Shown: positions 1 to 53,122 of the stretch, piece by piece
Numbering within the stretch: the first letter of the stretch is position 1
How the letters are laid out: each line of letters opens with the position of its first letter
IMG/VR virus record: IMGVR_UViG_3300008117_000011
Location: 124,001 to 188,000 of that record
DNA length: 64,000 bases
Reading direction: 5' to 3' (one strand)
The notes under the pieces: generated by a model
The model's database searches: none
Told to the model about the DNA's origin: nothing
Seen by the model: only the letters and a program-made list of their open reading frames with translations
Translations under genes and position numbers: made by a program

Positions 1-556
1 GTGTTCCGCCAGTTATAGTTAAAAGTGCTGTCCCATCAAAAGTATCAACACCAGATGGGTGAATCACATTACAAAACACATCCATAGGAAATATTGTAAG
101 AACATCACATTCATTTCTAGGTTTAATAGTAATTGGTTTTTTGGGACAAGCATTATTAATACATTTACCACCATTACTAACAACAATACTTCCTTCATAA
201 TCAAAATATGGTTTTGTTTTTGCACAAAAATTAAATGTCTGACCTGTTGGTAAGATACCATCAAATAAAACATTGTTACAATTTACATATTGTGTTGTTA
301 TTGGTTCTGATGGTGTTTTAAATGTGTAACAATTACAATCACAATCACAACTACCACTATAATCTATTGTAAATGTTGTTGTACTAACACAAGTTCCTGA
401 ACTATAGTAGTTTACATAAAAACATTCACCACTTAAGACTTCTGTGTTTGTGATATCTAAAACGACATAATTATTTACAAAACCAGACAGATTTGGTTCG
501 TTACTATAAAATGGTGTAAGAGTTCCATTACAAGGATATAGTTTATAACATGCCAT
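1..556 (-). CDS. Cys-rich virion/fibre-associated protein, 3'-truncated by the window edge; SprB-like repeat begins near the edge
   Basis: Not in the ORF track. Hand translation from ATG at 556 gives MACYKLYPCNGTLTPFYSNEPNLSG...CDCDCNCYTF...NECDVLTIFPMDVFCNVIHPSGVDTFDGTALLTITGGT, open to position 1. TATTTAT motif at 568-574. Confidence 0.75.
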   Translation of the reverse strand, partial: MACYKLYPCNGTLTPFYSNEPNLSGFVNNYVVLDITNTEVLSGECFYVNYYSSGTCVSTTTFTIDYSGSCDCDCNCYTFKTPSEPITTQYVNCNNVLFDGILPTGQTFNFCAKTKPYFDYEGSIVVSNGGKCINNACPKKPITIKPRNECDVLTIFPMDVFCNVIHPSGVDTFDGTALLTITGGT

Positions 557-575
557 TCTTTTTAATAATAAATAA

Positions 576-1556
576 TTACTTTTTTGTTTTTTGAATAAAT
601 GATTTCATTAATTCAATATACTTTATTGTTGATGAATTTTTATCAATATAATCAAAATGATTTTCATTTTTAATTAGACATTCAATTGGGTCAATATTTA
701 TGTATTCACCTTTATAGAATTTTGTTGATTTTAAGTCGTCGGTTACTCCTGCCATATGAAGTATTGGGCACTTTTCATATTTTTCAATGTTATCAGTTGC
801 CCAAGAAAAATTAAGATCCTTAATAACACTTGTTTTGTTTCCATTAAGCCAAAGGTTCCAAAGAAGCGACCACATTTCTGCAGTCCAAAATTGTATCTGC
901 CCTGGATTGATCGGGAACCTTTTTTGATATGAGTGCATTTGAAAATACAATGGTGTTGAGTCTTCGTATATTTTATACCACAACTTGGAGTCAGTATTTT
1001 TTACAATATATTGGCCACCCCCAGAATTTTCTTGATTTTCTTTTATCACATTTACATCAATTCCAATAACATCAGCCATTTCACTTAATAGTTGTCCTTT
1101 CTTAGAATTTTTATGTTGCCTTTCATATCTATCACAACAGTCAATAATGTAATTATATCCAATGTATCCTATGGTGTCTGAAAGGTATGATATATCATCT
1201 TTTAATAATGTTTCAAAATCTGGTAATTCTCTAAAAATAATATCAGCATCGTGAAGAAAAAATGATTTACCAAATTGTGGATATTCTTCAAGCCATCTTG
1301 AAATTAAATATGGTTTTATACTTGGTATATATGTTTTTTTTCTTCTACTATCTTCATAGAAATGTATATTAACCCCAAGATTTAAAAGTTCTTTAGCACC
1401 TTCGGATGGTTCTTTTGCTCCGTGGACCATTGCTAGTATTACGTGAATATTTTTTGGGTTAATTCCTTTTTCAATAAAATTATGAACATATAACTTTATT
1501 TGCCAATGAAAATAAGAAACATCTGGTTGTGCGGATACAAAAACTAAATCTTGCAT
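576..1556 (-). CDS. Glycosyltransferase, GT-A fold, HPAT/SERGT1 (GT95/GT96)-like
   Basis: Ordered motifs YFHWQ, YIPSIKPY, hydrophobic strand + DAD (FFLHDADIIFR), GYIG, GGGQY, WTAEMWS and ILH. These parallel plant peptidyl-serine galactosyltransferase/Hyp arabinosyltransferase motifs as I recall them. Confidence 0.7.
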   Translation of the reverse strand: MQDLVFVSAQPDVSYFHWQIKLYVHNFIEKGINPKNIHVILAMVHGAKEPSEGAKELLNLGVNIHFYEDSRRKKTYIPSIKPYLISRWLEEYPQFGKSFFLHDADIIFRELPDFETLLKDDISYLSDTIGYIGYNYIIDCCDRYERQHKNSKKGQLLSEMADVIGIDVNVIKENQENSGGGQYIVKNTDSKLWYKIYEDSTPLYFQMHSYQKRFPINPGQIQFWTAEMWSLLWNLWLNGNKTSVIKDLNFSWATDNIEKYEKCPILHMAGVTDDLKSTKFYKGEYINIDPIECLIKNENHFDYIDKNSSTIKYIELMKSFIQKTKK

Positions 1557-1615: not shown

Positions 1616-4600
1616 TTAGTTATTTAAATTCTCAAGAGCCGATATTCTATTTTTTAACTCATCTATTACTACTTGTTGTTCTTTTATAGCTTCAACAAGT
1701 AATGGTATCATAGCGTCAGTATGAACACCTTTGTACTGATCAACTTTATTTGTAAATGATAATCTAGGTTCAACAGATTCAACTTGTTGTGCGATAAATC
1801 CAAATCTTTCATCATTTCCACCAGCTTTTCTATCTTTCCATTGATATGTAACACCACTTAGTTGTAATATTGTATCTAAACCACCAGTTATTGGTTTTAT
1901 ATTTTCTTTTAGTCTTTCATCTGATGTATTTGTTGTTAACTTACCTGTTGCATCTATTCTAATGTCATTAACAAAAGCTGAAGTACCCACACTTCTTAAT
2001 GCAATATTTTCAGCTTCTAAGTAATTAACAACATATACCACAGGTTCATTTGTCCCACTAAAAACTGAAGTTGTATCACCAGATGGTAACAAATATAATG
2101 TGTCATCAGTACCACTTGTTCTAAAAATAATTGGACCATCAGATTCATTAACAATAAATAAAGTAGCGTTTGTTGACCCAGTACTAAAATTAGCTTCAAG
2201 AGCTGAGTAGTTACTATATTGAGTTAGTCTAGTATTTAAACTTGGTGATGTTGTACCATTATATAACCTAATATTTGATCCTGCTGACCCAGTTCTTAAC
2301 TGAATATTATTTTCAATTGACGCTGTTTCTGAGTAAATACCAAGTTCATTATTTGGTCCAACTGATAAACCTGGTATAAGACTACTATAAGTGTTATTTG
2401 GTCCTCCAATTCTTACATTTCCGGTTATTCTTGTGTTACCACTAACGTGTAATTTTTCACTTGGTGTTTCCAATCCAAGTCCAATAAAGCCTTTGCTACT
2501 ACCATTACCATCAATAAACATATGTGCGGTAGATAAATCTGGTGTTGTTCCAGCATAAAATCTTATATTATCAAGTGGAACCGATCCAGATGGTGCGTTT
2601 ATAATATTTAAGTTTCTTGTATTTGCTCCGGCATATAAAAACATATCACCATTACCACCATAACCCGGGAATATGGTATCAGTCCAACTTCTCATTCCAA
2701 CGCTACCTCCAGTTGCTGGTTGGACAAAACTATTAAAGGCTATGGTGACATCAAATCTTGGTATTCCAGTACTTGAGAAAATATTAAACCTTCCTCCTGT
2801 TGATGTTGGATCATAGTAAAATTCACTATTTGTTCCGACAACTTGTAAGGGATATTGTGGTGAGTCGGTACCAACACCCAATCTTTCATTTGCTAAGTCA
2901 ACTGTAATCCCACTATTGGACCCAAAATAAACATTTCCTTCATCTAAAGGATTTATATTTAATGGAGAACAAGAATGAATATTATAAACATATAAATCAT
3001 CAACACAATCTGTCGGTGACCCAATTGTTGTCGCAGATATTGTTGTTGCTGATAATCCACCAGTAAACGTTGTTGTTCCAGTTACAATACCACCACTAAA
3101 ACCACCGGTTGTTCCAGTAACAACAAATCCATTTACATCAATTCCTAAATTATTAATTGATGTACCAGTTCCAAGTAAAGATATGTTTAGATATGGTACA
3201 TAAACGGTATCGTCTGTTGTACCAGTTATATTTTGACCACCAATAACCACAGACCTATTACCAGATACAAGTGAATCGCTTGAGTGTATAAATGATCTAC
3301 TACCATTTGCAATTGATTGGTAACCACCAGCGTGTGAAGCATTTCCAGATGCTATTGTAAAATATCCTTCTGTATGTGAAAATGATCCATTCGCTATTGT
3401 TGCATAACCCTCAGCATGTGAAGCACCCCCGCTTGCGAGTGTTGTAATACCCTCTGCGTGTGCCCAAGTAGTTGTCGCACTTGTTTGTTGACCTTCTGAA
3501 TGTGAATAATCACCAGAGGCTGTTGTTTGATAACCTTCTGAATGTGAATAATTACCGGATGCTGTTGTTTGATAACCTTCTGCGTGTGATGTAATACCAT
3601 TGGCAATTGTTAAACCACCTTCTGCGTGTGAACCAAGTCCGGCTGCGGTACCACCACTTATAATATTAAAACCATCATAATAACCACCTTCAGCGTGAGC
3701 TCCTTGATTTGCAGCCAAAGAATAATACCCTTCAGCGTGTGAACGAAGAGTACTGGCAATTGTTGAGTCTCCTTCTGTGTGTGTATAATCACCAAGGGCT
3801 TGGGTAAAAAATCCTTCAGCATGTGAATAATCTCCTTGTGCAATTGTTGAGAGTCCCTCTGCATGTGAAGCGATACCAGTTGCTGTTGTAAGTTGTCCTT
3901 CGGCATGTGAATTATCTCCAGTGGCTATTGTTCCAGCTCCTTCGGCGTGTGACCCAATTCCGGTTGCCGACCCACCACTAAAATAAAAAAATCCATTAAA
4001 ATATCCACCTTCGGCGTGTGATGCAAAACCTCCGGCGATTGACTGGTATCCTTCAGCATGTGATGTGTCACCGCTAGCTATTGTTGAGTCACCTTGTGAG
4101 TGTGAAGCGACACCAATGCTTGTTGTACTAACTCCTTCTGCGTGTGATGTAGCACCATTGGCAATTGTATTATACCCCTCGGTGTGTGATCTTAAACCAA
4201 ACGCACTTGTAGATTCACCTTCGGCGTGTGAAAAATCACCTCCCGCAATAGTTGAATACCCCTCGGCGTGTGCGCTATCACCACTAGTTGTTGTAGAACT
4301 ACCTTCCGCATGTGATGAGGCACCACTAGTTGTTGTAGAACTACCTTCCGCATGTGAAGCAAATCCGGTGGCGTTTGTTTGAATTCCCTCAGCATGCGAA
4401 TAATTACCTTGTGCTATTGTATTGGCTCCTTCAGCATGACTTATTATCCCTAATGCATATGATGTATCACCCTCAGCGTGACTACCTTGTAAAGCTATTG
4501 TTAAAACACCCTCAGCGTGTGAATAATCACTAGCTTGTGTTTGATAACCCTCAGTATGTGAATAATCACCAGCTACAGTCTGAAACCCTTCGGCGTGTGA

Positions 4601-4918
4601 AGTAAGCCCGCTAGCAATTGACCCATCGCCACTTGCTGTTGAGTTATTACCTGATGCTAATGTTTGGTTTCCCCAAGCAACAGCCCTATCACCAGTGGCA
4701 TCAAGTCCGGTTGGGTTTACAGCTTTTATTGAGTCTACACCAGTAGATCCTGATGTCCAATAATCGGTTGGGAATATGACATTACTCAAAACTTGGCCGA
4801 TGCTTGCTTTATATGATGAGCCAGCTGGATTTTGTGATGTATCACCAGTTATGACAATGTGAATTAAATCATTTAATGTTACGCCAGTAGCTAAAGTCCT
4901 ATCGGTAAGAAATGCCAT
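1616..4918 (-). CDS. Trimeric tail fibre/adhesin with YadA-head-like SHAEG repeats and C-terminal peptidase S74 intramolecular chaperone
   Basis: About 30 repeats of a ~14-aa unit SHAEGxxTxAxG. C-terminus has TSDERLKENI...GVTYQWK...GFIAQQVE...LLVEAIKEQQ followed by a coiled coil. Confidence 0.88.
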   Translation of the reverse strand: MAFLTDRTLATGVTLNDLIHIVITGDTSQNPAGSSYKASIGQVLSNVIFPTDYWTSGSTGVDSIKAVNPTGLDATGDRAVAWGNQTLASGNNSTASGDGSIASGLTSHAEGFQTVAGDYSHTEGYQTQASDYSHAEGVLTIALQGSHAEGDTSYALGIISHAEGANTIAQGNYSHAEGIQTNATGFASHAEGSSTTTSGASSHAEGSSTTTSGDSAHAEGYSTIAGGDFSHAEGESTSAFGLRSHTEGYNTIANGATSHAEGVSTTSIGVASHSQGDSTIASGDTSHAEGYQSIAGGFASHAEGGYFNGFFYFSGGSATGIGSHAEGAGTIATGDNSHAEGQLTTATGIASHAEGLSTIAQGDYSHAEGFFTQALGDYTHTEGDSTIASTLRSHAEGYYSLAANQGAHAEGGYYDGFNIISGGTAAGLGSHAEGGLTIANGITSHAEGYQTTASGNYSHSEGYQTTASGDYSHSEGQQTSATTTWAHAEGITTLASGGASHAEGYATIANGSFSHTEGYFTIASGNASHAGGYQSIANGSRSFIHSSDSLVSGNRSVVIGGQNITGTTDDTVYVPYLNISLLGTGTSINNLGIDVNGFVVTGTTGGFSGGIVTGTTTFTGGLSATTISATTIGSPTDCVDDLYVYNIHSCSPLNINPLDEGNVYFGSNSGITVDLANERLGVGTDSPQYPLQVVGTNSEFYYDPTSTGGRFNIFSSTGIPRFDVTIAFNSFVQPATGGSVGMRSWTDTIFPGYGGNGDMFLYAGANTRNLNIINAPSGSVPLDNIRFYAGTTPDLSTAHMFIDGNGSSKGFIGLGLETPSEKLHVSGNTRITGNVRIGGPNNTYSSLIPGLSVGPNNELGIYSETASIENNIQLRTGSAGSNIRLYNGTTSPSLNTRLTQYSNYSALEANFSTGSTNATLFIVNESDGPIIFRTSGTDDTLYLLPSGDTTSVFSGTNEPVVYVVNYLEAENIALRSVGTSAFVNDIRIDATGKLTTNTSDERLKENIKPITGGLDTILQLSGVTYQWKDRKAGGNDERFGFIAQQVESVEPRLSFTNKVDQYKGVHTDAMIPLLVEAIKEQQVVIDELKNRISALENLNN
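3270..4700 (-). repeat. Coding tandem repeat array, mostly 42-bp (14-aa) period, within the fibre gene
   Basis: 37-bp identical copies at 4279-4315 and 4321-4357. Further near-identical 42-bp-spaced copies around 3491-3582. Confidence 0.9.
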
Positions 4919-39996: not shown

Positions 39997-42900
39997 TTAA
40001 TCAAATGCCACTTTACCGTTGAAGGTGTTTTTCTTTTTATTTGTATTCAAATCACTATACGCTTCTTTGAGTAATTTTTGATTGTCCTTTGTATTGTCGT
40101 TTACCTCTGTTGAGTACTCAAGTTCACTTTCTGGTTTGTCAATTTTAAAATTAACAAATTTTTGATATTCAGGACTTGTTTCAAAATCGGTAAATACCTT
40201 TTTCTCAGCATCAAATTCTTTTATATGTTCTGTTTTAACACTTGCACAAGTTTCTTTTATTGTATTTTCCATTGTTGTGTTAAGTTTTACTCTTTCAGTA
40301 ATAATACTTTCTACAAATGTATTATACTTACTATCATCAGTAAAGATATTTGACATAACAAAGTAAAATCTAAGATCCGCATCATCTAACAATATACCAT
40401 TAACTAATGGTACAAATGTAAAATTACTATCATCTACAAAACTATTATTTAGTATTTTTTTATCATTTATGGTTTTGAAATAATCATTTAAATTTGTTAC
40501 AATTTTATCTGGATAAATTTTTTGTAACTCTTGTTGTTTTGATTGATTTAGAACATTATCTAAATTATAAACTTTATATTTACCTGTCTCTAATTTATAA
40601 CCATCAATTACGTTTCCAATAACAAGATCCAAATCTTTAAATATTTGAACATAATTTTGCTGATAGTTTGTAAGTTCATTAATAAAACCTACGGTATCGT
40701 CAAGTATTTTATTTTCTTGTTCTGAGACAAGTTCAATTAGTTTATTTTTGTATTCTCTTTTTGTTTGTTTAGAATATTCATCAGTTGCAATAGGTCTAAC
40801 TAATGGACAATTATCATCTTCAATATCTTTTATAGTTTGTTTAATTAAACTAGTTACTAAATCTTCATATTGAATCATCTTACCTAGAATTTCAACTTCT
40901 ATTGGTGGTATTGCCTGTTCATTTTCTTTTTCCGGTAAATTACCTTTACTATAATTCCTAGTTTTAGAAAGTATTTGTAGTGTTGGGTAATTTCTAACTT
41001 CGTTTATTGATTTAAGTTGGTTAAATATTGTTGTAAAATACGTATTTGTTGATGTTGATAGATTTTCAAATAATTTAGTATATTCAATATTACCAGTTTG
41101 GTATGCACCATCGTCAAAGTTGCTAGTTGATAGTATGGTACCAATAGTACTTCCACCCTTTTCTGGGATTAAATTTTGTATATCACCATTGTTAACCCCT
41201 AATCCCGGATTGTTATTTAATATTTTTTGAACTAAAGCTTCGTCTTTATCTTTTGTACTTTCTGTTGGGATTGACCTTTCATCATATATTTCTGTATTTG
41301 CATAGAAATTAAATGAAAGTGCGTTTTGTAGTTGTTGGACCGGATTCGCAAGACCCTGTCCACCAATAAAGTCAAAACCTAATGAAATTTTTGCAATCAT
41401 AGGTTGTACACCAATTCCTTCAGGATTTATGTCATATAAAAGTGGTTCATATGATATTTGTAAATCATTTGGTATTATCTTTGAGTGGAAGAAGTCACCA
41501 ATTCTTAGAACTAGCACTGGTGGTGCCCCAAAAGATGTATTTCTAGCATCATTATATTTTGGTTTACCATCCGGACCAATTACTGGAATTGTTTGTCCAG
41601 GTCTTACACATTGTTGTAAGAATGTAAGTCTAGCGTTTAATCCTTCTGGTGTCATTGAATGGAAGGCCGGATTAAAGAATTTTATTTTATCTTTAAAGCT
41701 TGAGTATACCATTGGGTTTGTTTCTTTGATTACCTCAAAATAATCACATTCAGAAAATAATGTTCTTAATACTTGTTTAGAAATACCATCTTTAATTTTT
41801 TTATCAATAGTTGGTTTTGGTGTTGGTGTTGGTTTTGGTGCTTCAATATTTTCTTTACCACAAGCATTACGACAATTTGTTTCACCAGTAAATTGTGCTG
41901 GATCATTTGGTGATGTAACTTCAATACAATTACCATCAACACAATTAAATCTTCTATTGTCAACCGGAACTATAGGATTTACAACTGGTACTTCTACAAC
42001 TTCAATATCTACTGGTGGCGGTGTAAAACTATCAATATTAATTTTAGTTATTGCGACTCTGCGACAAGCCATCGCTGGTACACTATACCATTGTGATAAA
42101 GATGTTACTTTATTTGTACTAGCATCTTGTATGTCCGCGGTACAAACAACATTTGTAATACTAGGGTCACCACTTGTATTAGGTATTACAGTTTCTTCAC
42201 CTAACGAACTAAAAGAAAATTTTACTTGTCCTCCTTCAATCCACTCACTTATTTTTTTATCACCAACAGTTTGATCTTTAAACCAATTTTCAACAACACT
42301 ATTTCTTCTTTGTGATAATTTTTTATTATAAGCTTCTTTTGCTGGCGCCGATGCGGAGCCAGTTAGTTCTATTGTAACTTTTCCTTGATAATCAACAAGT
42401 AGTTCTTTTAGTTTAGGTAGGAATTCAGTTTTTATTGCGTTAAAATTTCCTTCAACAACTTTATTGAAAAATGGTGCAACACCACTAGAGGTGTACTCTT
42501 TCCCAGCGCTGATTACTTTTGCCGGTGCTTTTGACACGTAATCTGTTGATTTTTTACCTATATATTGATCATACCAAAATTGGAAGGATGAATTTAAATT
42601 TGTTTCAAAACTTGTTTGTCCAATTGGGTAGTCATTGTCAAAGTAAAAACCATAACCAATGAATTTGTTTAAATCGTTACCAAATGTATCTTGTGTCACA
42701 TCACTAACTTTAGATGTGAATGTTTCTGTTGTTTGATTATCACCCTTTTTACTACCATCAGATGTACTATTTGATCCATTCGTTCCTTGTCCACCGGTAT
42801 TACCAACAATTTCTTGATTTACCAACTTAATTTCTTCATCGGTTGCACCCGGATTTTGTAATATTTGTTGATAAGTATATAATTTGTCGGTAGGTATTGT

Positions 42901-45108
42901 ATTAAACTTAGCTGCTAGTTCATATAAATCATATTTTACGCAACCAGCAAAAAATGAATCCATTATTGAGTCAATTCTTTCTGGTGGAACGTTTGCTAGT
43001 TGTTTTTCAATAATTGTGTTCATCGCTGATGGGTGGTCAACAATAATTTTCCAACTTATACTTCCACCTCTTGTTGTTTCTTTGTATGTATATATTGGTT
43101 CTGGTCTACCTAAAAATGATGTTGGGTTCCAAGTGGCTCTTGAGGATTCACTAAAACTTAAATCATAAGGTGGGAACCACATAGTTCTACCTCCGTTTGG
43201 TCCTTTTTCACAAGTCGGTAAATCTTGATATGTAAACCCTGGTCTGTCTGATGTTCTCCAAGCTAAGTTTTCAAGTGAGAACATATATTTCTTTACCTTA
43301 CCATCAACAATGTTTGTTGATCCTGGATTTCTTAATGGTGCAATATTTAAATTAAATGTATTATCAAGAACTGAATTATTAAATCTTCTTCCAGCTGTTG
43401 TAATACCATCAGTTTTTTGTAAATCAGCATATGTTAGATATGGTGTATCTTTTTGAAATACTCTACAATATTCAATTCCAGCTTCAGCTCCAGATGTGTT
43501 ATCGGTATATGAAACAACCCTTGACCCTTTTGTCATTTCTTTATACCCATCATTGAAAACTTTTGATACTTGATTAATTGCGTTTCCAACGTGTTGTAAT
43601 CTTCTAATACCAGTTACACTATCAGCAGAGTCTACAAGTCGTTGAGTATTATCAAGTATTGACCCTTGTTTAAACTCAAATCCGGTAGATTCGGTATCAT
43701 CATTAAATTCATTTTTAACTTCAAAAAATTCTTCGTCCTGACTTGTTGGGTCTCCGCCAGGTTTTACTTTAAAGCCTAAGTTATCTTTATATTTTGGTGA
43801 TACCCAAGTAAATTGTCCTGTAATACCCCCTTGGTCAGAATATGATTTACCAGCAAGACCAAATTTTATTTTTGCGTCATTACCTTCATATAGTTTTCCA
43901 AGTTCAGACGGTCCGTAAACTGGTGATGGTTGTTGTTTACCATAAGCGTCAACCGGAATTTCATTATCTGGTGAATCAACTCTTGATGGGTCAGTTTTTT
44001 CGTCTCCAACATAAAATCCACCACCTTGTGTTGTATTGTTACCTAATAAGTTATTAATGGCTGTTGTAGCACCCAAAAGTAATCCTTTGTTATAACTTGG
44101 TCTATATTTGTTATAATCTAAACTTTTAAATAAAACAGATTTTTGTCCGTACCCAGTGTTTGATAAAAATAATTCTGACGGATTTCTATATTTGTTTAAT
44201 ATTGGGCCAAGTAGTCCACCAGTTAAATTATTAACAACATTTAATGCATTTTCTGTTTGTGGTGAAAGAACTTGATTTGTTTCATCAAAGTAATCACCAG
44301 GAATAAAAGATACTGGAAAATAAGTTCCAGTTATTCTATTTAAAAGATTTACACCAGCAAGTAATGGGTTTTCTGGTACAGTAATTTTCCAGTTCTTACC
44401 AATAAGTGGTTGTTGTCCCGTTGCAACAAGACTTGCCTCAAATGGGTCTTGTAGTGAATCTAAATTTACAACACTATTTAAAATTTGTTGCTCTTCATAT
44501 GCAATTCTTTCTTCAAAAGCAAATTTTAAAGAATCAGCACCTATTTTTGCAAGAAATGAATCTTGTGATAAAGGCCCATCTGATCCTTGTGGTGTATTTG
44601 ATGTAATAATTTCAAATGGCGTGTATTGTGAAGGAATAAATACAAGCGGATTTAAATCATAATATGGTAAAAAATATTGGTATCCAGGGGTTACGTCAGT
44701 TACAATTACCAAATCTTTGTAACCAGCTTCTGGTCCAAATGCATTTTTTACATATGCCGCATCAATATAGAATTCATTTATAAGTTCTAAATCACTATCT
44801 TCATATCCATATTCTCCTTGGTTTGACTCAACTGGAAGTGGTGGATTATTTGTGTTTACAATTACACTATAACCACCTTCTGGACCATACTCATTTAACG
44901 GATAAAGTTCATTTGCTTGAACTGCTGTTCCTACTAAGTCATTTGGTGAATCAATTACTGAATTATCAGAAAGTGGCGTTGCTTCATATACAACATCACC
45001 TGCTGGTGCTGTATAAGCTCCGGGAACATTATATGGTGCCAGGTTTCTGGCAATAAGAGTGTTCCTAAACGATGAGGATGATGCAAATGATAATGAGCTT
45101 TCTGACAT
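39997..45108 (-). CDS. 1703-aa tail-tube initiator/baseplate protein with inserted OmpA-like domain
   Basis: FPPYDLSFSESSRATWNPTSFLGRPEPIYTY...SISW and APPVLVLRIGDFF tube-initiator-like motifs. IELTGSAS...YNKKLSQRR...LGE...CRRV OmpA-like motif. Confidence 0.65.
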   Translation of the reverse strand: MSESSLSFASSSSFRNTLIARNLAPYNVPGAYTAPAGDVVYEATPLSDNSVIDSPNDLVGTAVQANELYPLNEYGPEGGYSVIVNTNNPPLPVESNQGEYGYEDSDLELINEFYIDAAYVKNAFGPEAGYKDLVIVTDVTPGYQYFLPYYDLNPLVFIPSQYTPFEIITSNTPQGSDGPLSQDSFLAKIGADSLKFAFEERIAYEEQQILNSVVNLDSLQDPFEASLVATGQQPLIGKNWKITVPENPLLAGVNLLNRITGTYFPVSFIPGDYFDETNQVLSPQTENALNVVNNLTGGLLGPILNKYRNPSELFLSNTGYGQKSVLFKSLDYNKYRPSYNKGLLLGATTAINNLLGNNTTQGGGFYVGDEKTDPSRVDSPDNEIPVDAYGKQQPSPVYGPSELGKLYEGNDAKIKFGLAGKSYSDQGGITGQFTWVSPKYKDNLGFKVKPGGDPTSQDEEFFEVKNEFNDDTESTGFEFKQGSILDNTQRLVDSADSVTGIRRLQHVGNAINQVSKVFNDGYKEMTKGSRVVSYTDNTSGAEAGIEYCRVFQKDTPYLTYADLQKTDGITTAGRRFNNSVLDNTFNLNIAPLRNPGSTNIVDGKVKKYMFSLENLAWRTSDRPGFTYQDLPTCEKGPNGGRTMWFPPYDLSFSESSRATWNPTSFLGRPEPIYTYKETTRGGSISWKIIVDHPSAMNTIIEKQLANVPPERIDSIMDSFFAGCVKYDLYELAAKFNTIPTDKLYTYQQILQNPGATDEEIKLVNQEIVGNTGGQGTNGSNSTSDGSKKGDNQTTETFTSKVSDVTQDTFGNDLNKFIGYGFYFDNDYPIGQTSFETNLNSSFQFWYDQYIGKKSTDYVSKAPAKVISAGKEYTSSGVAPFFNKVVEGNFNAIKTEFLPKLKELLVDYQGKVTIELTGSASAPAKEAYNKKLSQRRNSVVENWFKDQTVGDKKISEWIEGGQVKFSFSSLGEETVIPNTSGDPSITNVVCTADIQDASTNKVTSLSQWYSVPAMACRRVAITKINIDSFTPPPVDIEVVEVPVVNPIVPVDNRRFNCVDGNCIEVTSPNDPAQFTGETNCRNACGKENIEAPKPTPTPKPTIDKKIKDGISKQVLRTLFSECDYFEVIKETNPMVYSSFKDKIKFFNPAFHSMTPEGLNARLTFLQQCVRPGQTIPVIGPDGKPKYNDARNTSFGAPPVLVLRIGDFFHSKIIPNDLQISYEPLLYDINPEGIGVQPMIAKISLGFDFIGGQGLANPVQQLQNALSFNFYANTEIYDERSIPTESTKDKDEALVQKILNNNPGLGVNNGDIQNLIPEKGGSTIGTILSTSNFDDGAYQTGNIEYTKLFENLSTSTNTYFTTIFNQLKSINEVRNYPTLQILSKTRNYSKGNLPEKENEQAIPPIEVEILGKMIQYEDLVTSLIKQTIKDIEDDNCPLVRPIATDEYSKQTKREYKNKLIELVSEQENKILDDTVGFINELTNYQQNYVQIFKDLDLVIGNVIDGYKLETGKYKVYNLDNVLNQSKQQELQKIYPDKIVTNLNDYFKTINDKKILNNSFVDDSNFTFVPLVNGILLDDADLRFYFVMSNIFTDDSKYNTFVESIITERVKLNTTMENTIKETCASVKTEHIKEFDAEKKVFTDFETSPEYQKFVNFKIDKPESELEYSTEVNDNTKDNQKLLKEAYSDLNTNKKKNTFNGKVAFD

Positions 45109-47219: not shown

Positions 47220-47369
47220 TCATTTTTTATCTTCAAGTAACTTGTCAATGGTATACTTTCTAAAATAGGTGGGCATTATCAAATAATCACTATATGATAG
47301 ATGAAGCATTTTTGCTAAAAAAATGTATTCGTCAATAATAATTTTTCTATACTCAGAAGAAAGGCCGAA
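47220..47369 (-). CDS. Frameshift extension of the tail assembly chaperone (gpGT-like 'T' frame)
   Basis: +1/-2 frame overlapping the end of 47353..48117: FGLSSEYRKIIIDEYIFLAKMLHLSYSDYLIMPTYFRKYTIDKLLEDKK*. Slippery GAA TTT TTT CGG at 47376-47365. Confidence 0.72.
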   Translation of the reverse strand, partial: FGLSSEYRKIIIDEYIFLAKMLHLSYSDYLIMPTYFRKYTIDKLLEDKK

Positions 47370-48117
47370 AAAATTCAACCCCAAAAGTAATGTTTACCAT
47401 TACTCTTTCTCCAGACGGGGCTATAACTTCTTTGTTTAAATCTAATCTTGGTTCATTGTTTACCAAAAATGATCTTATATATTTAGAATCCATTATAGGC
47501 ATTGACTCAACAAATTTTCCAATTTCAGATCTGTCTTGTGATCCGTTTATTTCAACAATTTGTTTGGCAAGTCTTAATGTTATAATTGGTGCTGTTCTTC
47601 CTTGAGGGTATGAATCAACAATACTTTCAATTTCAAGCGAATCCCTAAGTGTTAAAAGTTTTAATTTAACAGTCGCCTTACTTCTTGGTAAAGTTGTTGT
47701 AAATGTACCATCAGTATCTGGTTGTGCTTCACATTTTTTGATATCCATCTCATCTAGTAAAATTGATGATTCAAATTTTTTCTCAGTTTTTGGGTCAATA
47801 AGTGTTACTTTATATTCCGGACCAAAAGATGTGTTTCTTAAAAATAAAAGTATTGCTTCAATATCACCATCAAGCAAATCTTCCGGACGAAGATCTGGTT
47901 CGTAAAGTTTATTTCTTAATAGTGGTAATACAATTGTTTCTTTAATTGTTTTATTACCCTCAATATTAAGTAATATATTCTCATCGCTTGCGGTTAAATA
48001 ACCCACTTTAACTGATTTCTTTTTTGATGGGTAAAAAATACCACCTGATGGTAATGGTACAACATCGTGTGGTAAGTTAAAATTCATTTGTCCAGCATCA
48101 TTTACACTTATATCCAT
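47353..48117 (-). CDS. Tail/baseplate-hub assembly chaperone (T4 gp26-like)
   Basis: VPLPSGGIFYP...LTASDENIL...DLLDGDIEAILLFLR...FGPEY, ending FGVEFFRPFF; lies between tube and tape measure. Confidence 0.78.
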   Translation of the reverse strand: MDISVNDAGQMNFNLPHDVVPLPSGGIFYPSKKKSVKVGYLTASDENILLNIEGNKTIKETIVLPLLRNKLYEPDLRPEDLLDGDIEAILLFLRNTSFGPEYKVTLIDPKTEKKFESSILLDEMDIKKCEAQPDTDGTFTTTLPRSKATVKLKLLTLRDSLEIESIVDSYPQGRTAPIITLRLAKQIVEINGSQDRSEIGKFVESMPIMDSKYIRSFLVNNEPRLDLNKEVIAPSGERVMVNITFGVEFFRPFF

Positions 48118-48212: not shown

Positions 48213-48701
48213 TTAGTACACGAGTATACAACGATCCATTCGTAAACCACAAGTAATATCAGCAAGTGCATCTTGACTATAAGATAATGTACCAAAGTTA
48301 GCTGAAGTTAAAAATGTTCCTTCTAGAATCCACTTCTCAACAACAACACCTGTTGGATCTAACATCTCAAGGTCAACATTTTTCTTATATCCTGCAGCAT
48401 AACCCATACGACCAGTTACTGATTCAGCACATAAACGAACCCATTCCATAAGTGCTTGTGAGGCTGATGGTCCAATTGGGTCACGGAATTTAACTGAAAT
48501 TTCATCCCAAGTAAATCTACCTGCAACATATGTTGAGGTGTTTAGGAACTGAATCTCAGTTGGGTTTATTTTTATTGAAGGCCGAGACGCACTTTCTACA
48601 TACCATTCATTTATACCCAAACTTGATGGAAATCTCAAGATAAACCTGTTCTGTCGTTTGGGCTCATACGGAACCGGCATCTTCATTAATAAATCAGCCA
48701 T
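48213..48701 (-). CDS. Tail tube protein (gp19-like)
   Basis: EPKRQNRF...SASRPSI...YVAGRFTWDEISVKFRD...LMEW...LEMLDPTGVVVEKWILEGTF. Confidence 0.9.
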   Translation of the reverse strand: MADLLMKMPVPYEPKRQNRFILRFPSSLGINEWYVESASRPSIKINPTEIQFLNTSTYVAGRFTWDEISVKFRDPIGPSASQALMEWVRLCAESVTGRMGYAAGYKKNVDLEMLDPTGVVVEKWILEGTFLTSANFGTLSYSQDALADITCGLRMDRCILVY

Positions 48702-49786: not shown

Positions 49787-52700
49787 TCACACATCCTCAA
49801 ACGAAGCACCTGTTGGTGTGATGTAGAAGGTAATGTCAATAAATTCAAGAGATTTTGTAGGTTTGATATAGATTTTACCAACAAGTTGGTTTTTATCTAA
49901 ATCTTCTGTACTATTAGAAACTGTTACTCTAAAGTCATACAAACCTCTATCTCTTCTAATTGCATCAAGAATTGGGTTAACCGCATTCAAGAAGTCCTGT
50001 CTTACTTGTTGATCATTTTGATCAAACAATAGCCTTACAGAAACCGCAGAAATCAACTTACGAGCTTGTAGTAACAATCTTCTTACGTTAATTCTGTCAA
50101 GAGCAGATTCTCTTACTTGTAGAGTTTTGTTACCCCAGATTACAGTACCAACATCAGAGAAAGTTGCAATTGGGTTAATTCTACCAAGGTAAAGAACATC
50201 TCTATCTTCTTGTGTCAACTTCTTACGAGCTTTAACCGCATTAACAATACCACGAGTATAACCAGCGGCCGCAAACCAAGGGAATGCAATGTTATCAGTT
50301 AACGCCAAGTTTCTTGTAACTTCAGCTGTTGGTGGTATGTAGATTTGTGTATTATTCACAGTATCTCTTGTTAATACCCAAGGATAATAAGTTGCTGTGT
50401 AGTTAGAATCAATTCCTGTTTCTTCTAACAAGTCAACAGCTTCTTGTGGGTAAATTAAACCATCAGATTCAGTTGTTGTTGCTTGGAACATATTAAAGTC
50501 TGGCATTGTTGTTACATAAAGTGAGTCAGCTCTTTCGTTCTCAATCATATCAATTGTACCCTCAACAAGACCGGAGTTATTGTAAAGATCAATACCCGGT
50601 GTTGTAAATACATTGATGTTAACAGCTTCAGGATTTGCAAATGTTCTAATACCTAACATATAAGCATAGTAATCTGTGTTACCGTATTCCACACTACCAT
50701 CACCGATAGATATTTGTTTGAATAGTCCGTTTCCAGTACCATTAGGGTATCTTGTTGATGTGCACGCTCCTTTTAAGAAACCAGATCTACCAAGAGTAAA
50801 CTTATCTGCGTTTGTTCTATATTCTCTATAGATGTCCCATCCGTCAAATCCACCATAAACAAATACTGTGAATTTTCTTGAGTTTAATCTGTAGTAAGGA
50901 TTCTCAGGGTCAGTTGGTTCAGAAGAGAATGATGTATTACCAACCTCAAACGCTGGAGTTCCAGATGATGCGTAAACACTTGAAATTGTTACAGCACTAG
51001 CGAATTGGTCCATATGGTATCCTTTTGTTTGGAAATCCCATTCAACACCTTCACCAGTACAAAGATTAAGAGGTCGTCTTTTTCCTTTATATTGGAAGAA
51101 ATCACTATCGTAACCCCAGAATGATGAAAGTCCAAGATATGTTCTTCTTACGTTATCCCCAGGACTTGTAAATACATCGTCAATTCCGTTAGATAATCCA
51201 AATGGTGGGTTATAAACAACTTCACCAGGTATATCATATTTAGTTTTGTAAACTGGGAATGGAGATGTTACTCCCGGATATTCTCTAAATGTATAACCTC
51301 TAAATCCACAAGGAAGAGCGTCAATTGGTGCGTCCTCATTCATCTCTATTAAAATGTATTTAGAATTCAACACGTATTCACCATCAAGAGTTCCTACTTT
51401 TTTAGCGATGAAATTATTTTCTTGTGGGTTCATAGAACAATTTGTGAACTTTTCAAGAACTGTTGGGTTAGCATCACTATCAAAATAATCTCTAATCAAT
51501 AATGTGAATGTTAAATTATTAAATGAAATATCAGAAATTGACACTTTAATTTCAGTGTTTGCTGAATTACCATCAGAAATGCTATAAACTTTAAATAAGT
51601 TGAATACTTTATTACCTCTAACTTCAGAAACAACCCAAGGTGTTACAGGGGACTGGAATCTATCTAAATACCATCCAATTGTATTAGGGTCATTTGCTTG
51701 AGCTTCTTCTGTTGTTACAAGTTCAGAACTTAATCCTCTAATAAATCCTTTATTCCATCCATAACTTAAAAGAGTTTGGAAATTTTCTTCAACCATAAGT
51801 GGTGTTTGTAATCTTGGTTTACCAAAGTTACTTTTCCCAAATACTTTATTGATATTTTTAGAGTCGTTTGAAGACAATGAAACCTCAAAGTCAAAATCAG
51901 TACCAACTTTATTTGTCGCATTGATTGCAAATTTAGCGAAAGGATTTTTCTTAACTGAAGAATAAACACCTGTCATATCTAAAGTAACATCAGTAACACC
52001 AGTGATTTCGTAAACTGGGTTAACATCAGTACTATAAGTTGAGATACCTCTTGATCTTAAAGTTACAACAACTAAGTCATCATATTCAGTGTATGATGTT
52101 CCAGTGTAATAATAGATAACACCAGTAACATTACCAGAATAGCACTCATTTACAATTGGGGCTGTTGGTGTTGGCGTTGGTGGAACTGGAGTTAAAGTAA
52201 CACAAGGATCTGGTGTTGGTGTTGGCGTTGGTGCCGCACTTGTTGTTGTGGTTGTAACCGGTGTTATATTTGTTAAATCCGTTACTGTTGTAAAGAATGA
52301 ATAACCAGTATAAAGACCTGAACCAACATTGTCCATAAGGGCATAATACCAAGCATCGTTAAGTGGTGATGAAGTGTCTAAAGATTCAAAAGGAATTGAC
52401 TCAACACCAAAAACATTTGTTTCTTGTGTATATCCTGTTGTACTTAAATATGTGTAATCACTTTCTGGTATAGCACCAAAATAGTAAACAACCTCATCTT
52501 CCGCAGTTGATGGGTTACTACTTGTTATCACATCTGAGACCATTAAACTAATTTGGTCATCAAGAGTTGTGATGTCACCATCTAACTCTTCATATTCCTC
52601 AGTCAACATACTTTCAATGTCAGACGGAAAAGCACCTAAGAATAATACGTTAGTTGGATTGAGTGTACAAGCACTAAAAGGAATTGAGAATGACAATTCT

Positions 52701-53122
52701 TTTTTAACAACACATACTGGTTCACAATCAACTGTTACACCACTTAAACAAAAATAATCCAATGTTTTAGGATCTAAGTTAGCTTTAGTTACAATTGACC
52801 AAGATGGACCCGCATCATATCCGGATAATCCTAATATTCTTGTTACAAATAATTGATTTGATTGTTGTAAATATGACTTAGCAATATATGCCGCTTCATA
52901 TTTAGGGATTTGTGTATTTACAAATTTTTCTGGTGAAGTTCCACCGAAATAAACTTGGAATTCGTCGTAGTTCTTAACAAAGATTGGTTCAAATGCTGGA
53001 CCCCTTAAAGTCTCACCGGCAATACCTAATGTGGTAACACCAACACTTTGTGCAACGAAACTCAAATCTACTTCAGAAGTGTACACACCTGGTGATACAA
53101 AAACTTTACTGTTAGTAGCCAT
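49787..53122 (-). CDS. Contractile tail sheath protein (gp18-like) with large inserted domain
   Basis: FVSPGVYTSEVD N-terminus; YYPWV, WFAAAGYTRG, INPIATF...WGNKTL...LDRINVRRLL and IKPTKSLEFI. Confidence 0.95.
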   Translation of the reverse strand: MATNSKVFVSPGVYTSEVDLSFVAQSVGVTTLGIAGETLRGPAFEPIFVKNYDEFQVYFGGTSPEKFVNTQIPKYEAAYIAKSYLQQSNQLFVTRILGLSGYDAGPSWSIVTKANLDPKTLDYFCLSGVTVDCEPVCVVKKELSFSIPFSACTLNPTNVLFLGAFPSDIESMLTEEYEELDGDITTLDDQISLMVSDVITSSNPSTAEDEVVYYFGAIPESDYTYLSTTGYTQETNVFGVESIPFESLDTSSPLNDAWYYALMDNVGSGLYTGYSFFTTVTDLTNITPVTTTTTSAAPTPTPTPDPCVTLTPVPPTPTPTAPIVNECYSGNVTGVIYYYTGTSYTEYDDLVVVTLRSRGISTYSTDVNPVYEITGVTDVTLDMTGVYSSVKKNPFAKFAINATNKVGTDFDFEVSLSSNDSKNINKVFGKSNFGKPRLQTPLMVEENFQTLLSYGWNKGFIRGLSSELVTTEEAQANDPNTIGWYLDRFQSPVTPWVVSEVRGNKVFNLFKVYSISDGNSANTEIKVSISDISFNNLTFTLLIRDYFDSDANPTVLEKFTNCSMNPQENNFIAKKVGTLDGEYVLNSKYILIEMNEDAPIDALPCGFRGYTFREYPGVTSPFPVYKTKYDIPGEVVYNPPFGLSNGIDDVFTSPGDNVRRTYLGLSSFWGYDSDFFQYKGKRRPLNLCTGEGVEWDFQTKGYHMDQFASAVTISSVYASSGTPAFEVGNTSFSSEPTDPENPYYRLNSRKFTVFVYGGFDGWDIYREYRTNADKFTLGRSGFLKGACTSTRYPNGTGNGLFKQISIGDGSVEYGNTDYYAYMLGIRTFANPEAVNINVFTTPGIDLYNNSGLVEGTIDMIENERADSLYVTTMPDFNMFQATTTESDGLIYPQEAVDLLEETGIDSNYTATYYPWVLTRDTVNNTQIYIPPTAEVTRNLALTDNIAFPWFAAAGYTRGIVNAVKARKKLTQEDRDVLYLGRINPIATFSDVGTVIWGNKTLQVRESALDRINVRRLLLQARKLISAVSVRLLFDQNDQQVRQDFLNAVNPILDAIRRDRGLYDFRVTVSNSTEDLDKNQLVGKIYIKPTKSLEFIDITFYITPTGASFEDV

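Follow-up and report, generated by a model that had tools for sequence, protein, structure and literature searches.

A conserved threonine/proline-rich loop in a phage tail sheath is a probable glycosylation tag for a predicted phage glycosyltransferase family

A short threonine/proline-rich tract in the tail sheath of a phage is real and conserved, and it is probably one of several sugar-attachment tags that would be served by a previously unnamed phage glycosyltransferase family, PHROG_4417, which travels with such tags in many phages. The sheath gene lies in a window of 64,000 nucleotides (positions 124,001 to 188,000 of IMG/VR record IMGVR_UViG_3300008117_000011), and positions given here are those of the window unless stated otherwise (Table 1). 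A first-pass annotation made from the sequence alone had described the tract as a mucin- or extensin-like brush exposed along the tail, and as the most obvious substrate of a glycosyltransferase encoded in the same window. The observation of the tract is confirmed, although its position had been given one base too high so that translation of that interval is out of frame. The interpretation is supported only in part, as set out below. Glycosylation and surface exposure of the loop remain inferred.

Table 1. Features of the window discussed in the text, all on the minus strand.
Position	Strand	Feature	Basis
49787..53122	-	Tail sheath gene, 1111 aa	PF17482 4.6e-10 (39.9 bits, cut-off 26.9); PF04984 2.3e-7 (31.2 bits, just under its cut-off of 31.4); PHROG_23 1.2e-53
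52157..52264	-	Thr/Pro-rich tract, residues 287-322; bipartite, with run 1, then Asp-Pro-Cys307 and a short spacer, then run 2	Conserved in 179 of 179 standard-length homologues; pLDDT below 50 in the model
52091..52777	-	Insertion domain, residues about 116-344, carrying the tract as a loop between strands 270-285 and 327-343	Only confidently modelled part of the sheath, pLDDT 70-90
52202..52204	-	Codon of Cys307, in the spacer between the two runs	Invariant in 70 aligned homologues, preceded by invariant Pro306
52142..52144	-	Codon of Cys327, at the start of the strand following the tract	Invariant in the same alignment
576..1556	-	Predicted GT-A fold glycosyltransferase, 326 aa	PHROG_4417 4.7e-68; AlphaFold2 pLDDT 92
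1242..1250	-	DxD motif of the glycosyltransferase, Asp103-Ala104-Asp105	Invariant in 37 homologues; at the end of strand 98-102 of the model
2..556	-	Start of a 620-aa SprB-repeat / Hoc-like virion protein, 20 nt downstream of the glycosyltransferase	Its own Thr-Pro tract lies just left of the window, near genome position 123.87 kb
1616..4918	-	Tail fibre gene directly upstream of the glycosyltransferase	Several PHROG tail-fibre families, 1e-14 to 1e-24
48213..48701	-	Tail tube gene, downstream of the sheath gene	PHROG_4542 9e-25; weak PF06841 hit
47353..48117	-	Baseplate hub gene, downstream of the sheath gene

The threonine/proline-rich loop of the tail sheath

The tract contains 14 Thr and 12 Pro in 36 residues, against 14.1% Thr+Pro in the rest of the protein (binomial P 5e-15). 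In 2000 shuffles of the protein the best 36-residue window reached at most 18 Thr+Pro. At the DNA level there are only two tiny 6-bp arrays, of 3.3 and 3.8 copies, so the tract is not a VNTR.

The protein is a genuine tail sheath. A profile of the family searched against sheaths in the PDB gave an E value of 2.6e-38, aligning residues 794-1111 with residues 319-652 of a solved phage tail-sheath chain (9ev2), and about 829-1111 with T4 gp18 residues 358-653. About 700 residues lie between the gp18-like N- and C-terminal parts, so that the first-pass annotation was right to place the tract in a large insertion. More than 3400 metagenomic homologues were found; the 120 examined are 1046-1220 aa in length, mostly 1103-1121 aa. 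A megablast search of cultured phages with the sheath gene found no match, and the closest cultured sheath is that of Microcystis phage Mel-JY01, at 30% identity.

An alignment of homologues for length polymorphism, a check proposed with the original annotation, does not support a variable brush. In the 179 standard-length homologues the loop measures 45-54 aa between anchors, has a T+S+P content of 58-85%, and always contains exactly one Cys. All 10 Cys residues of the sheath are invariant in the 70 aligned homologues, and Cys is generally enriched 3- to 5-fold within 8 residues of T/S/P tracts. Within the runs, poly-Thr and (Thr-Pro)n versions interchange at the same position while the Thr content is kept. 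A further 12 homologues carry about 105 extra residues at this point, and in three of these the alignment shows one insert between the two runs. A Pfam search found nothing in the inserted segment of the 1219-aa variants.

In the structural model the tract joins two adjacent long beta-strands of a single domain. That domain lies in the segment that replaces gp18 residues about 60-318. The full-length AlphaFold2 model, made with 70 homologues, was poor (mean pLDDT 40.5) and could not be used to place the loop on a sheath lattice, so outward exposure is only inferred, being plausible from topology, by analogy with gp18, and from the tolerance of inserted residues. Foldseek and VIA searches with the model found no significant known fold for the insertion domain, returning only weak PAS-like rows with Z below 5.

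A predicted GT-A glycosyltransferase family and its association with threonine-rich tracts

The putative enzyme has no Pfam hit at E<=10 and no NCBIfam hit. It is nevertheless predicted with confidence to adopt a GT-A fold. A Foldseek search of the PDB gave 296 matches at E<=1e-3, and every one of the top 50 ranks is a GT-A fold glycosyltransferase. VIA Z is 14.8 to glycogenin, 14.5 to Skp1 alpha-GalT and 12.9 to GlyE. The best structural neighbours include protein-directed enzymes (glycogenin, Skp1 GalT, GlyE and UGGT), and clusters containing HPAT-type peptide glycosyltransferases match by shape with TM 0.71-0.72. The first-pass annotation is supported in calling this ORF a glycosyltransferase, by fold and DxD motif.

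Comparative evidence ties this family to Thr-rich tracts on virion proteins. In 8 of 8 cultured phage lineages with a homologue of the enzyme (33-39% identity), virion proteins near it carry poly-Thr tracts, often at the C-terminus of the major tail or capsid protein. Cultured phages that have both enzyme and tracts include Enterococcus phages phiFL1A, VPE25 and nattely, Lacticaseibacillus phage R3.3 and Chryseobacterium phage MA9V-3. In five of the phages with the enzyme, all siphophages, the enzyme gene lies in the tail module, after the major tail protein gene or its Thr-rich extension and before the chaperone and tape-measure genes. In the reverse test, of 120 IMG/VR loci selected only by a poly-Thr DNA pattern, 19 contain the enzyme gene, and in 17 of these it is within 70 nt of a tract-bearing ORF on the same strand. 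None of 117 control loci selected by a random 14-mer contains it (Fisher P 1.8e-6); a poly-Glu control pattern found no loci.

A paired comparison was made using 27 loci homologous to the major tail protein of the Enterococcus phage phiFL1A. The 12 with a poly-Thr tail all have the enzyme gene immediately downstream, while none of the 15 lacking the tail has it (P 5.8e-8). The gene-positive loci fall in at least three separate identity groups.

Within the sheath clade, 6 of 6 IMG/VR records that reach the expected position 44-49 kb from the sheath carry the enzyme gene. Five of the six sheath loops could be extracted, and these include both poly-Thr-type and Thr-Pro-type loops. Moreover 77 of 80 IMG/VR loci of the enzyme have a T/S/P-tract ORF within 3 kb on the same strand, against 3 of 117 controls, and poly-Thr and Thr-Pro forms occupy the same position of the neighbouring protein, which is homologous to the 620-aa protein of Table 1. 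These last two comparisons were made within one clade and are not phylogenetically independent. Literature searches found no paper linking this enzyme family to poly-Thr tracts.

We note that the sheath is one of at least seven tract-bearing proteins in this phage, since at least six other ORFs of the genome carry the same kind of tract. These include the two genes directly downstream of the glycosyltransferase, the adjacency that is seen elsewhere, whereas the sheath gene is 48 kb away. The sheath loop is therefore not the most obvious substrate, as had been claimed.

Interpretation and alternative explanations

We consider it more likely than not that the tract is a conserved, intrinsically flexible loop that serves as an O-glycosylation tag. 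In this view, a soluble phage-encoded GT-A glycosyltransferase would transfer sugar from a nucleotide sugar onto the Thr hydroxyls in the infected cell, before or during tail assembly, and further glycosyltransferases encoded at the end of the record could extend the glycan. The sheath would be tagged alongside the Hoc-like and other proteins next to the enzyme, and the virion would then carry a regular array of short glycopeptide loops on the tail, not a long mucin brush. The analysis establishes the tract and its conservation, its placement as a loop in the model, the fold and DxD motif of the enzyme, and the coupling at the gene level between the enzyme family and Thr-rich tracts. That this particular loop is a substrate, that Thr is the acceptor, the transfer activity itself and the sugar used, that the loop faces outward, and any benefit (shielding, solubility or adhesion) are all inferred, and there is no direct evidence of any glycan. 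In addition the loop of this phage is mostly Thr-Pro, while the strongest tests used poly-Thr. The fixed loop length and the invariant Pro306-Cys307 and Cys327 point to a structural constraint that glycosylation does not explain. A predicted complex of the enzyme with sheath residues 116-344 gave an ipSAE of 0.01, which is not evidence either way.

The main alternative, which we think unlikely, is that the loop is purely structural. It would be a stiff, protease-resistant Pro/Thr spacer stapled by Cys307 and/or Cys327, forming disulfides after lysis within the domain or between sheath subunits, and carrying no sugar, while the glycosyltransferase would act only on other tract-bearing proteins such as its neighbours. 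The nearly fixed length, the single Cys in the loop, the invariant and tract-associated Cys residues, the distance of the enzyme gene from the sheath gene and its place directly beside other tract-bearing genes are consistent with this. However, two adjacent strands need no 36-residue spacer, and the sequence within the runs drifts freely between poly-Thr and Thr-Pro. The same composition is what co-varies with the enzyme elsewhere, and every clade record that is long enough keeps the enzyme.

It is less likely still that the loop is a ligand-binding or docking site, either an adhesion strip for host or environmental polysaccharide or an attachment point for a decoration protein, whether or not it is glycosylated. 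The extra residues of the 12 longer homologues make it look like a display site, and the phage encodes Hoc-like and SprB-repeat adhesin-type proteins with the same tracts. But no binding motif or fold was found, and low-complexity Thr/Pro sequence is a poor specific binding surface unless modified. Lastly, the ORF at 576-1556 might not modify proteins but glycosylate phage DNA or a host surface polymer, its co-occurrence with the tracts being incidental. Phage glycosyltransferases often modify DNA or host polysaccharide (PMC12619734), and this genome has a thymidylate-synthase-family gene and a separate cluster of six or seven glycosyltransferases, but this reading is very unlikely because it cannot explain the co-variation with the poly-Thr tail of an otherwise homologous tail protein, the 17 direct adjacencies to tract-bearing ORFs, or the position of the gene inside the tail-gene run of five siphophages.

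A broader possibility, that we offer tentatively, is that PHROG_4417 is an unrecognized family of virion-protein O-glycosyltransferases whose acceptor is a portable poly-Thr / Thr-Pro tag, enzyme and tag being gained and lost together. The module would occur in phages of Bacillota and Bacteroidota, in one phage whose record lists an Arcanobacterium host, and in a very abundant uncultured clade of large T4-related phages, where it would coat the contractile sheath, the fibres and the head decoration. A further cluster of GT2, GT7C-like, GT10 and GT11 (fucosyltransferase-type) enzymes and a methyltransferase might build a complex glycan on these tags.

Virion glycosylation by phage enzymes is documented for very few phages. 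If the module is real, glycosylated virions could be predicted from sequence alone in Enterococcus, Staphylococcus, Lactobacillus, Clostridium and Chryseobacterium phages, several of the cultured phages being available for direct test, and in the more than 3400 metagenomic sheath homologues. This bears on phage stability, stickiness, immune recognition in therapy, and the identification of virion proteins by mass spectrometry, and it offers a compact peptide tag and enzyme for glyco-engineering. For the sheath itself, it would to our knowledge be the first case of a contractile sheath carrying a regular array of glycosylated loops.

Comparison with known systems

The tract shares its composition (Thr, Pro, some Ser), a likely extended conformation and likely O-glycosylation with the Pro/Thr interdomain linkers of secreted bacterial enzymes and with mucin or extensin domains. 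A mucin-like domain has high Ser/Thr/Pro content, as does this tract, but it also has a long tandem-repeat array with length polymorphism, which is absent here. The tract has no Ser-Pro(3-5) motif of the extensin type, and no prolyl hydroxylase (2OG-FeII_Oxy_3) match was found in the 224-kb record, which is about 76% complete; with no HPAT model hit either, we rejected the extensin / hydroxyproline reading, although a shape resemblance to HPAT clusters remains. Interdomain linkers join two domains, while in the model this tract is a loop within one confidently modelled domain, although the rest of the protein is poorly modelled and in 12 homologues the two runs appear to flank the extra residues. 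Modification would be cytoplasmic, not secretory.

The enzyme resembles the GT8/GT24-type retaining GT-A glycosyltransferases (glycogenin, LgtC, UGGT and GlyE) over the whole chain, with Z of 13-15 over 210-246 aligned residues and a DxD motif, and it has the shape similarity to HPAT (GT95, PF23452) noted above. Several of these enzymes act on proteins or peptides. However, identity is only 8-13% and no HMM of any of these families matches. The PF23452 HMM found nothing in the genome at E<=1, though that search also gave no hit in any control genome.

The sheath itself is of the T4 gp18 type, the N-terminal about 60 and C-terminal about 300 residues aligning to gp18, and it is encoded beside the tail tube and baseplate genes. 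The extra material is inserted where gp18 has its outer domains; domains I/II of gp18 face outward (Aksyuk et al. 2009). About 700 inserted residues stand where gp18 has about 260, the one modelled insertion domain has no significant known fold, and there are ten invariant Cys residues.

Among the closest known systems is the virion glycosylation of mycobacteriophages (Freeman et al. 2023, as described in PMC12619734), where phage-encoded glycosyltransferases reportedly modify repeated virion subunits (capsid and tail tube) in the cytoplasm, the acceptor being a short appended peptide and not the folded core. The cultured relatives found here likewise carry the tract at the C-terminus of capsid or tail-tube proteins next to the enzyme gene, and in the window the gene lies between a tail fibre gene and tract-bearing virion genes. 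The present family differs in having no Pfam or NCBIfam name, and in its inferred tag, which is a poly-Thr or Thr-Pro run that in this phage forms an internal loop of a contractile sheath rather than a C-terminal tail. Its hosts span Bacillota and Bacteroidota, with one record listing an Arcanobacterium (Actinomycetota) host, in addition to the abundant uncultured clade.

A conserved Thr/Pro-rich loop in the tail sheath

The Thr/Pro-rich peptide is encoded on the minus strand as residues 287-322 of an 1111-aa ORF. The observation made in the first-pass annotation is therefore confirmed, although its coordinates were one base off, so that translating them directly gives a wrong frame. The tract contains 14 Thr and 12 Pro in 36 residues, compared with 14% Thr+Pro elsewhere in the protein; the binomial P is 5e-15, and in 2000 shuffles no 36-residue segment exceeded 18 Thr+Pro. 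At the DNA level there are only two 6-bp arrays of 3-4 copies. The window is part of a 223,671-bp IMG/VR virus record with 31% G+C and about 76% completeness, which has no close cultured relative.

The ORF is a tail sheath. Pfam PF17482 and PF04984 and PHROG_23 (1.2e-53) match its last 300 residues. A profile of the family aligns residues 794-1111 to a solved phage tail-sheath chain (9ev2) at residues 319-652, and about 829-1111 to T4 gp18 residues 358-653, while residues 9-64 align weakly to residues 4-59 of the 9ev2 chain. Genes for the tube and the baseplate hub follow. About 700 residues therefore sit where gp18 has its roughly 260-residue outer domains.

The sheath has more than 3400 metagenomic homologues, and the 120 that were listed are mostly 1103-1121 aa in length. 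The tract is present in every one examined as a bipartite element, comprising a first Thr-rich run of about 18 residues, an invariant Pro-Cys (Pro306-Cys307) with a short spacer, a second run of about 8 residues, and an invariant Cys327 that opens the next strand. Between sequence anchors the segment measures 45-54 residues in 179 homologues, always containing exactly one Cys, with T+S+P of 58-85%. The runs drift freely between pure poly-Thr and (Thr/Ser-Pro)n, so that composition is kept but sequence is not. In twelve homologues the segment between the anchors is about 105 residues longer. In the three seen in alignment (P0016, P0022 and P0038, about 1219 aa) the extra residues form one insert between the two runs; in these and in the sheath of IMG/VR locus L326 (1218-1223 aa in all) the insert is about 105-110 residues with Cys near each end, and Pfam finds no family in it. 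Eight further homologues of roughly normal total length also gave a long anchor-to-anchor segment.

The full-length AlphaFold2 model of the sheath is poor, with a mean pLDDT of 40.5. One domain, formed by residues about 116-287 plus 323-344, is confident at 70-90. Within it the tract (residues 288-322) has pLDDT below 50 and connects two long neighbouring strands, 270-285 and 327-343. In the model the tract is thus a long loop of one domain, not a linker between domains and not a variable mucin-like array. Structural searches with the model gave no significant match of this domain to a solved fold. Exposure of the loop is inferred, and three observations argue for it: the domain lies in the segment that replaces the surface domains of gp18, the loop is predicted to be disordered, and homologues tolerate about 105 extra residues at this point.

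All ten Cys of the sheath (residues 125, 133, 137, 152, 307, 327, 562, 605, 688 and 787) are invariant in 70 homologues. We note that Cys is enriched 3- to 5-fold within 8 residues of T/S/P tracts generally, with frequencies of 0.068 against 0.021 in the IMG/VR poly-Thr loci (L011-L130), and 0.116 against 0.024 in this genome. This suggests disulfide staples at the tract boundaries, or a recognition element.

A predicted GT-A glycosyltransferase associated with Thr-rich tracts

The first-pass annotation named a distant ORF as a glycosyltransferase that might act on the tract. Pfam (even at E 10), NCBIfam and PDB sequence searches with this protein give no meaningful match, the only PDB rows (E about 0.01) being to an unrelated splicing factor, and PHROGs places it in an unnamed family, PHROG_4417. 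By contrast the AlphaFold2 model is confident, with a pLDDT of 92. Foldseek finds 296 PDB matches at E<=1e-3, and every listed row (the top 50 ranks) is a GT-A fold glycosyltransferase, led by glycogenin, UGGT, GT6 enzymes and XXYLT1. An independent aligner gives Z of 14.8 to glycogenin, 14.5 to Skp1 alpha-galactosyltransferase, 13.8 to LgtC, 12.9 to the serine-rich-repeat adhesin enzyme GlyE and 10.9 to the chlorovirus capsid glycosyltransferase A64R. Asp103-Ala-Asp105 is invariant in 37 homologues. Among predicted structures the nearest named clusters carry the HPAT domain at TM 0.71-0.72, although the HPAT sequence model does not match, and a Bacteroidota protein fused to a galactosyltransferase domain matches at TM 0.89. 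The protein is therefore a GT-A glycosyltransferase by predicted fold and by motif, but not a demonstrable member of GT8 or GT95.

The association of this family with Thr-rich tracts is our main result. A tblastn search finds homologues (33-39% identity, about 96% coverage) in 77 cultured phage records. We examined eight phages of different groups: Enterococcus phiFL1A and nattely, Staphylococcus vB-SscS-F1, Lactobacillus Bacchae, Lacticaseibacillus R3.3, Clostridium phiCTP1, Chryseobacterium MA9V-3 and Arcanobacterium TPWB06. In all eight, virion proteins near the gene carry poly-Thr tracts of the same style, i.e. Thr runs broken by x-x-Pro. In phiFL1A and phiCTP1 the enzyme gene directly follows the major tail protein gene, while in the Staphylococcus and Arcanobacterium phages it follows a short Thr-rich ORF at the end of the tail protein gene region; in all four it precedes the chaperone and tape-measure genes. 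In the latter two phages the poly-Thr ORF overlaps or closely follows the 3′ end of the annotated major tail protein gene, and may be a frameshift or read-through extension of the tail protein and not a separate gene. The tail proteins of phiFL1A, phiCTP1 and nattely end in a poly-Thr tail.

The association was also tested in reverse. A DNA pattern encoding six Thr, two other residues, Pro and five Thr selected 120 IMG/VR loci (median 8.9 kb). Nineteen contain the enzyme gene, and in 17 of these it is within 70 nt of a tract-bearing ORF on the same strand, whereas none of 117 loci selected by a random 14-mer (median 8.9 kb, similar G+C) contains it (Fisher P 1.8e-6). In five of the poly-Thr loci (L016, L018, L062, L078 and L087) small ORFs of 60-107 aa, consisting of a Cys-Cys-Asn-aromatic motif followed by poly-Thr runs, lie directly beside the glycosyltransferase homologue on the same strand; these may be small glycosylated decoration or carrier peptides.

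A paired comparison was made using 27 IMG/VR loci homologous to the phiFL1A major tail protein (65-100% identity). The 12 whose protein ends in a poly-Thr tail all have the enzyme gene directly downstream, while the 15 without the tail have none within 3 kb (P 5.8e-8). Positives occur in at least three identity groups interleaved with negatives, so tag and enzyme are gained or lost together.

In the sheath clade the enzyme gene sits at a conserved 44-49 kb from the sheath gene. All 6 IMG/VR records that reach that position have it, and the 7 without it end before that position. Five of the six sheath loops could be extracted, of which three are Thr-Pro-type and two poly-Thr-type. In addition, 77 of 80 IMG/VR loci of the enzyme have a T/S/P-tract ORF within 3 kb on the same strand, compared with 3 of 117 controls, and poly-Thr and Thr-Pro versions occupy the same position of the neighbouring protein. 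Note that these last two comparisons lie within one clade and are not phylogenetically independent.

Other tract-bearing and structural genes of the phage

At least six other ORFs of the genome carry Thr-Pro tracts. Two of them follow the enzyme gene on the same strand. The first, directly downstream, encodes a 620-aa protein with SprB repeats (PF13573, 3.5e-11), weak Hoc-like head-decoration similarity and its own Thr-Pro tract; the second encodes an 844-aa protein. A tail fibre gene precedes the enzyme gene, and its product carries repeated Ser/Thr/Gly-rich units built around a His-Ala-Glu-Gly motif (PHROG_25468, six stretches) and a conserved fibre C-terminus. The sheath is thus one of several tagged proteins and, by adjacency, not the most obvious one. 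The structural region also contains three giant ORFs that have no PHROG match at 1e-5, and a ribonucleotide reductase gene (PHROG_367, 8.6e-132).

The far end of the record encodes a run of further glycosylation genes: a weak GT1-like ORF, GT2_5, a GT7C/GT2_2 galactosyltransferase-like ORF, GT11 and GT10 fucosyltransferase-type ORFs, another GT2 and a SAM methyltransferase, with a PolB-type exonuclease and a dUTPase interleaved. These could extend or build a complex glycan. No prolyl hydroxylase was found in the record, which is about 76% complete. A thymidylate-synthase-family gene (PF00303, 1.8e-59) elsewhere in the genome may be either ThyA or a pyrimidine hydroxymethylase; the latter would imply modified DNA. 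The SprB repeat, the low G+C and the Chryseobacterium phage being the nearest cultured carrier of the enzyme hint at a Bacteroidota host.

Coordinates of the sheath, its tract and the other features discussed (window positions unless stated; L-numbers denote locus records)
Feature	Position	Strand	Length
Tail sheath ORF	49787..53122	minus	1111 aa
Thr/Pro-rich tract	52157..52264	minus	36 aa
Predicted GT-A glycosyltransferase, PHROG_4417	576-1556	minus	
SprB-repeat / Hoc-like protein	2-556, continuing to genome 122694	minus	620 aa
Tail fibre gene	1616-4918	minus	
Giant ORF	15159-21176	minus	2005 aa
Giant ORF	33193-39681	minus	2162 aa
Giant ORF	39997-45108	minus	1703 aa
Ribonucleotide reductase gene	24506-26365	minus	
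Glycosylation gene run	genome 215.9-223.6 kb (L355:2942-10628)		
Thymidylate-synthase-family gene	genome 67095-67886 (L356:3071-3904)	minus	
Poly-Thr ORF, Arcanobacterium phage TPWB06	L359:18425-19187		
Poly-Thr ORF, Staphylococcus phage vB-SscS-F1	L008:19197-19919		

Proposed mechanism and comparison with known virion glycosylation

We propose that a soluble phage enzyme would O-glycosylate Thr in short, flexible, Thr-rich tags on virion subunits in the cytoplasm. In this view the tag in the sheath is an internal loop of an outer domain, so that the assembled tail would display one glycosylated loop per subunit in the helical array of the sheath. The analysis demonstrates the fold of the enzyme (as modelled), its DxD motif and the genetic coupling, while the acceptor residue, the sugar, the modification of this particular loop, its exposure and any benefit are inferences. 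The fixed length of the loop, the invariant Pro-Cys and Cys327 are not explained by glycosylation, and may reflect a disulfide staple.

The interpretation offered in the first-pass annotation is thus supported in part. The link to the enzyme is well supported by comparative genomics, but the descriptions of the tract as a mucin/extensin-like brush and as the most obvious substrate of the glycosyltransferase are not supported, and outward display and glycosylation remain inferred.

We found no paper linking this enzyme family to poly-Thr tracts, in a literature search that did not extend to most subscription journals. The nearest known system is the glycosylation of mycobacteriophage virions, reported to occur at the C-termini of capsid and tail-tube subunits (Freeman et al. 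2023, as summarised in PMC12619734). The present case, in which glycosylation is inferred, resembles it in logic. It differs in the enzyme family, in the nature of the tag (poly-Thr / Thr-Pro), in the internal position of the tag in a contractile sheath, and in host range.
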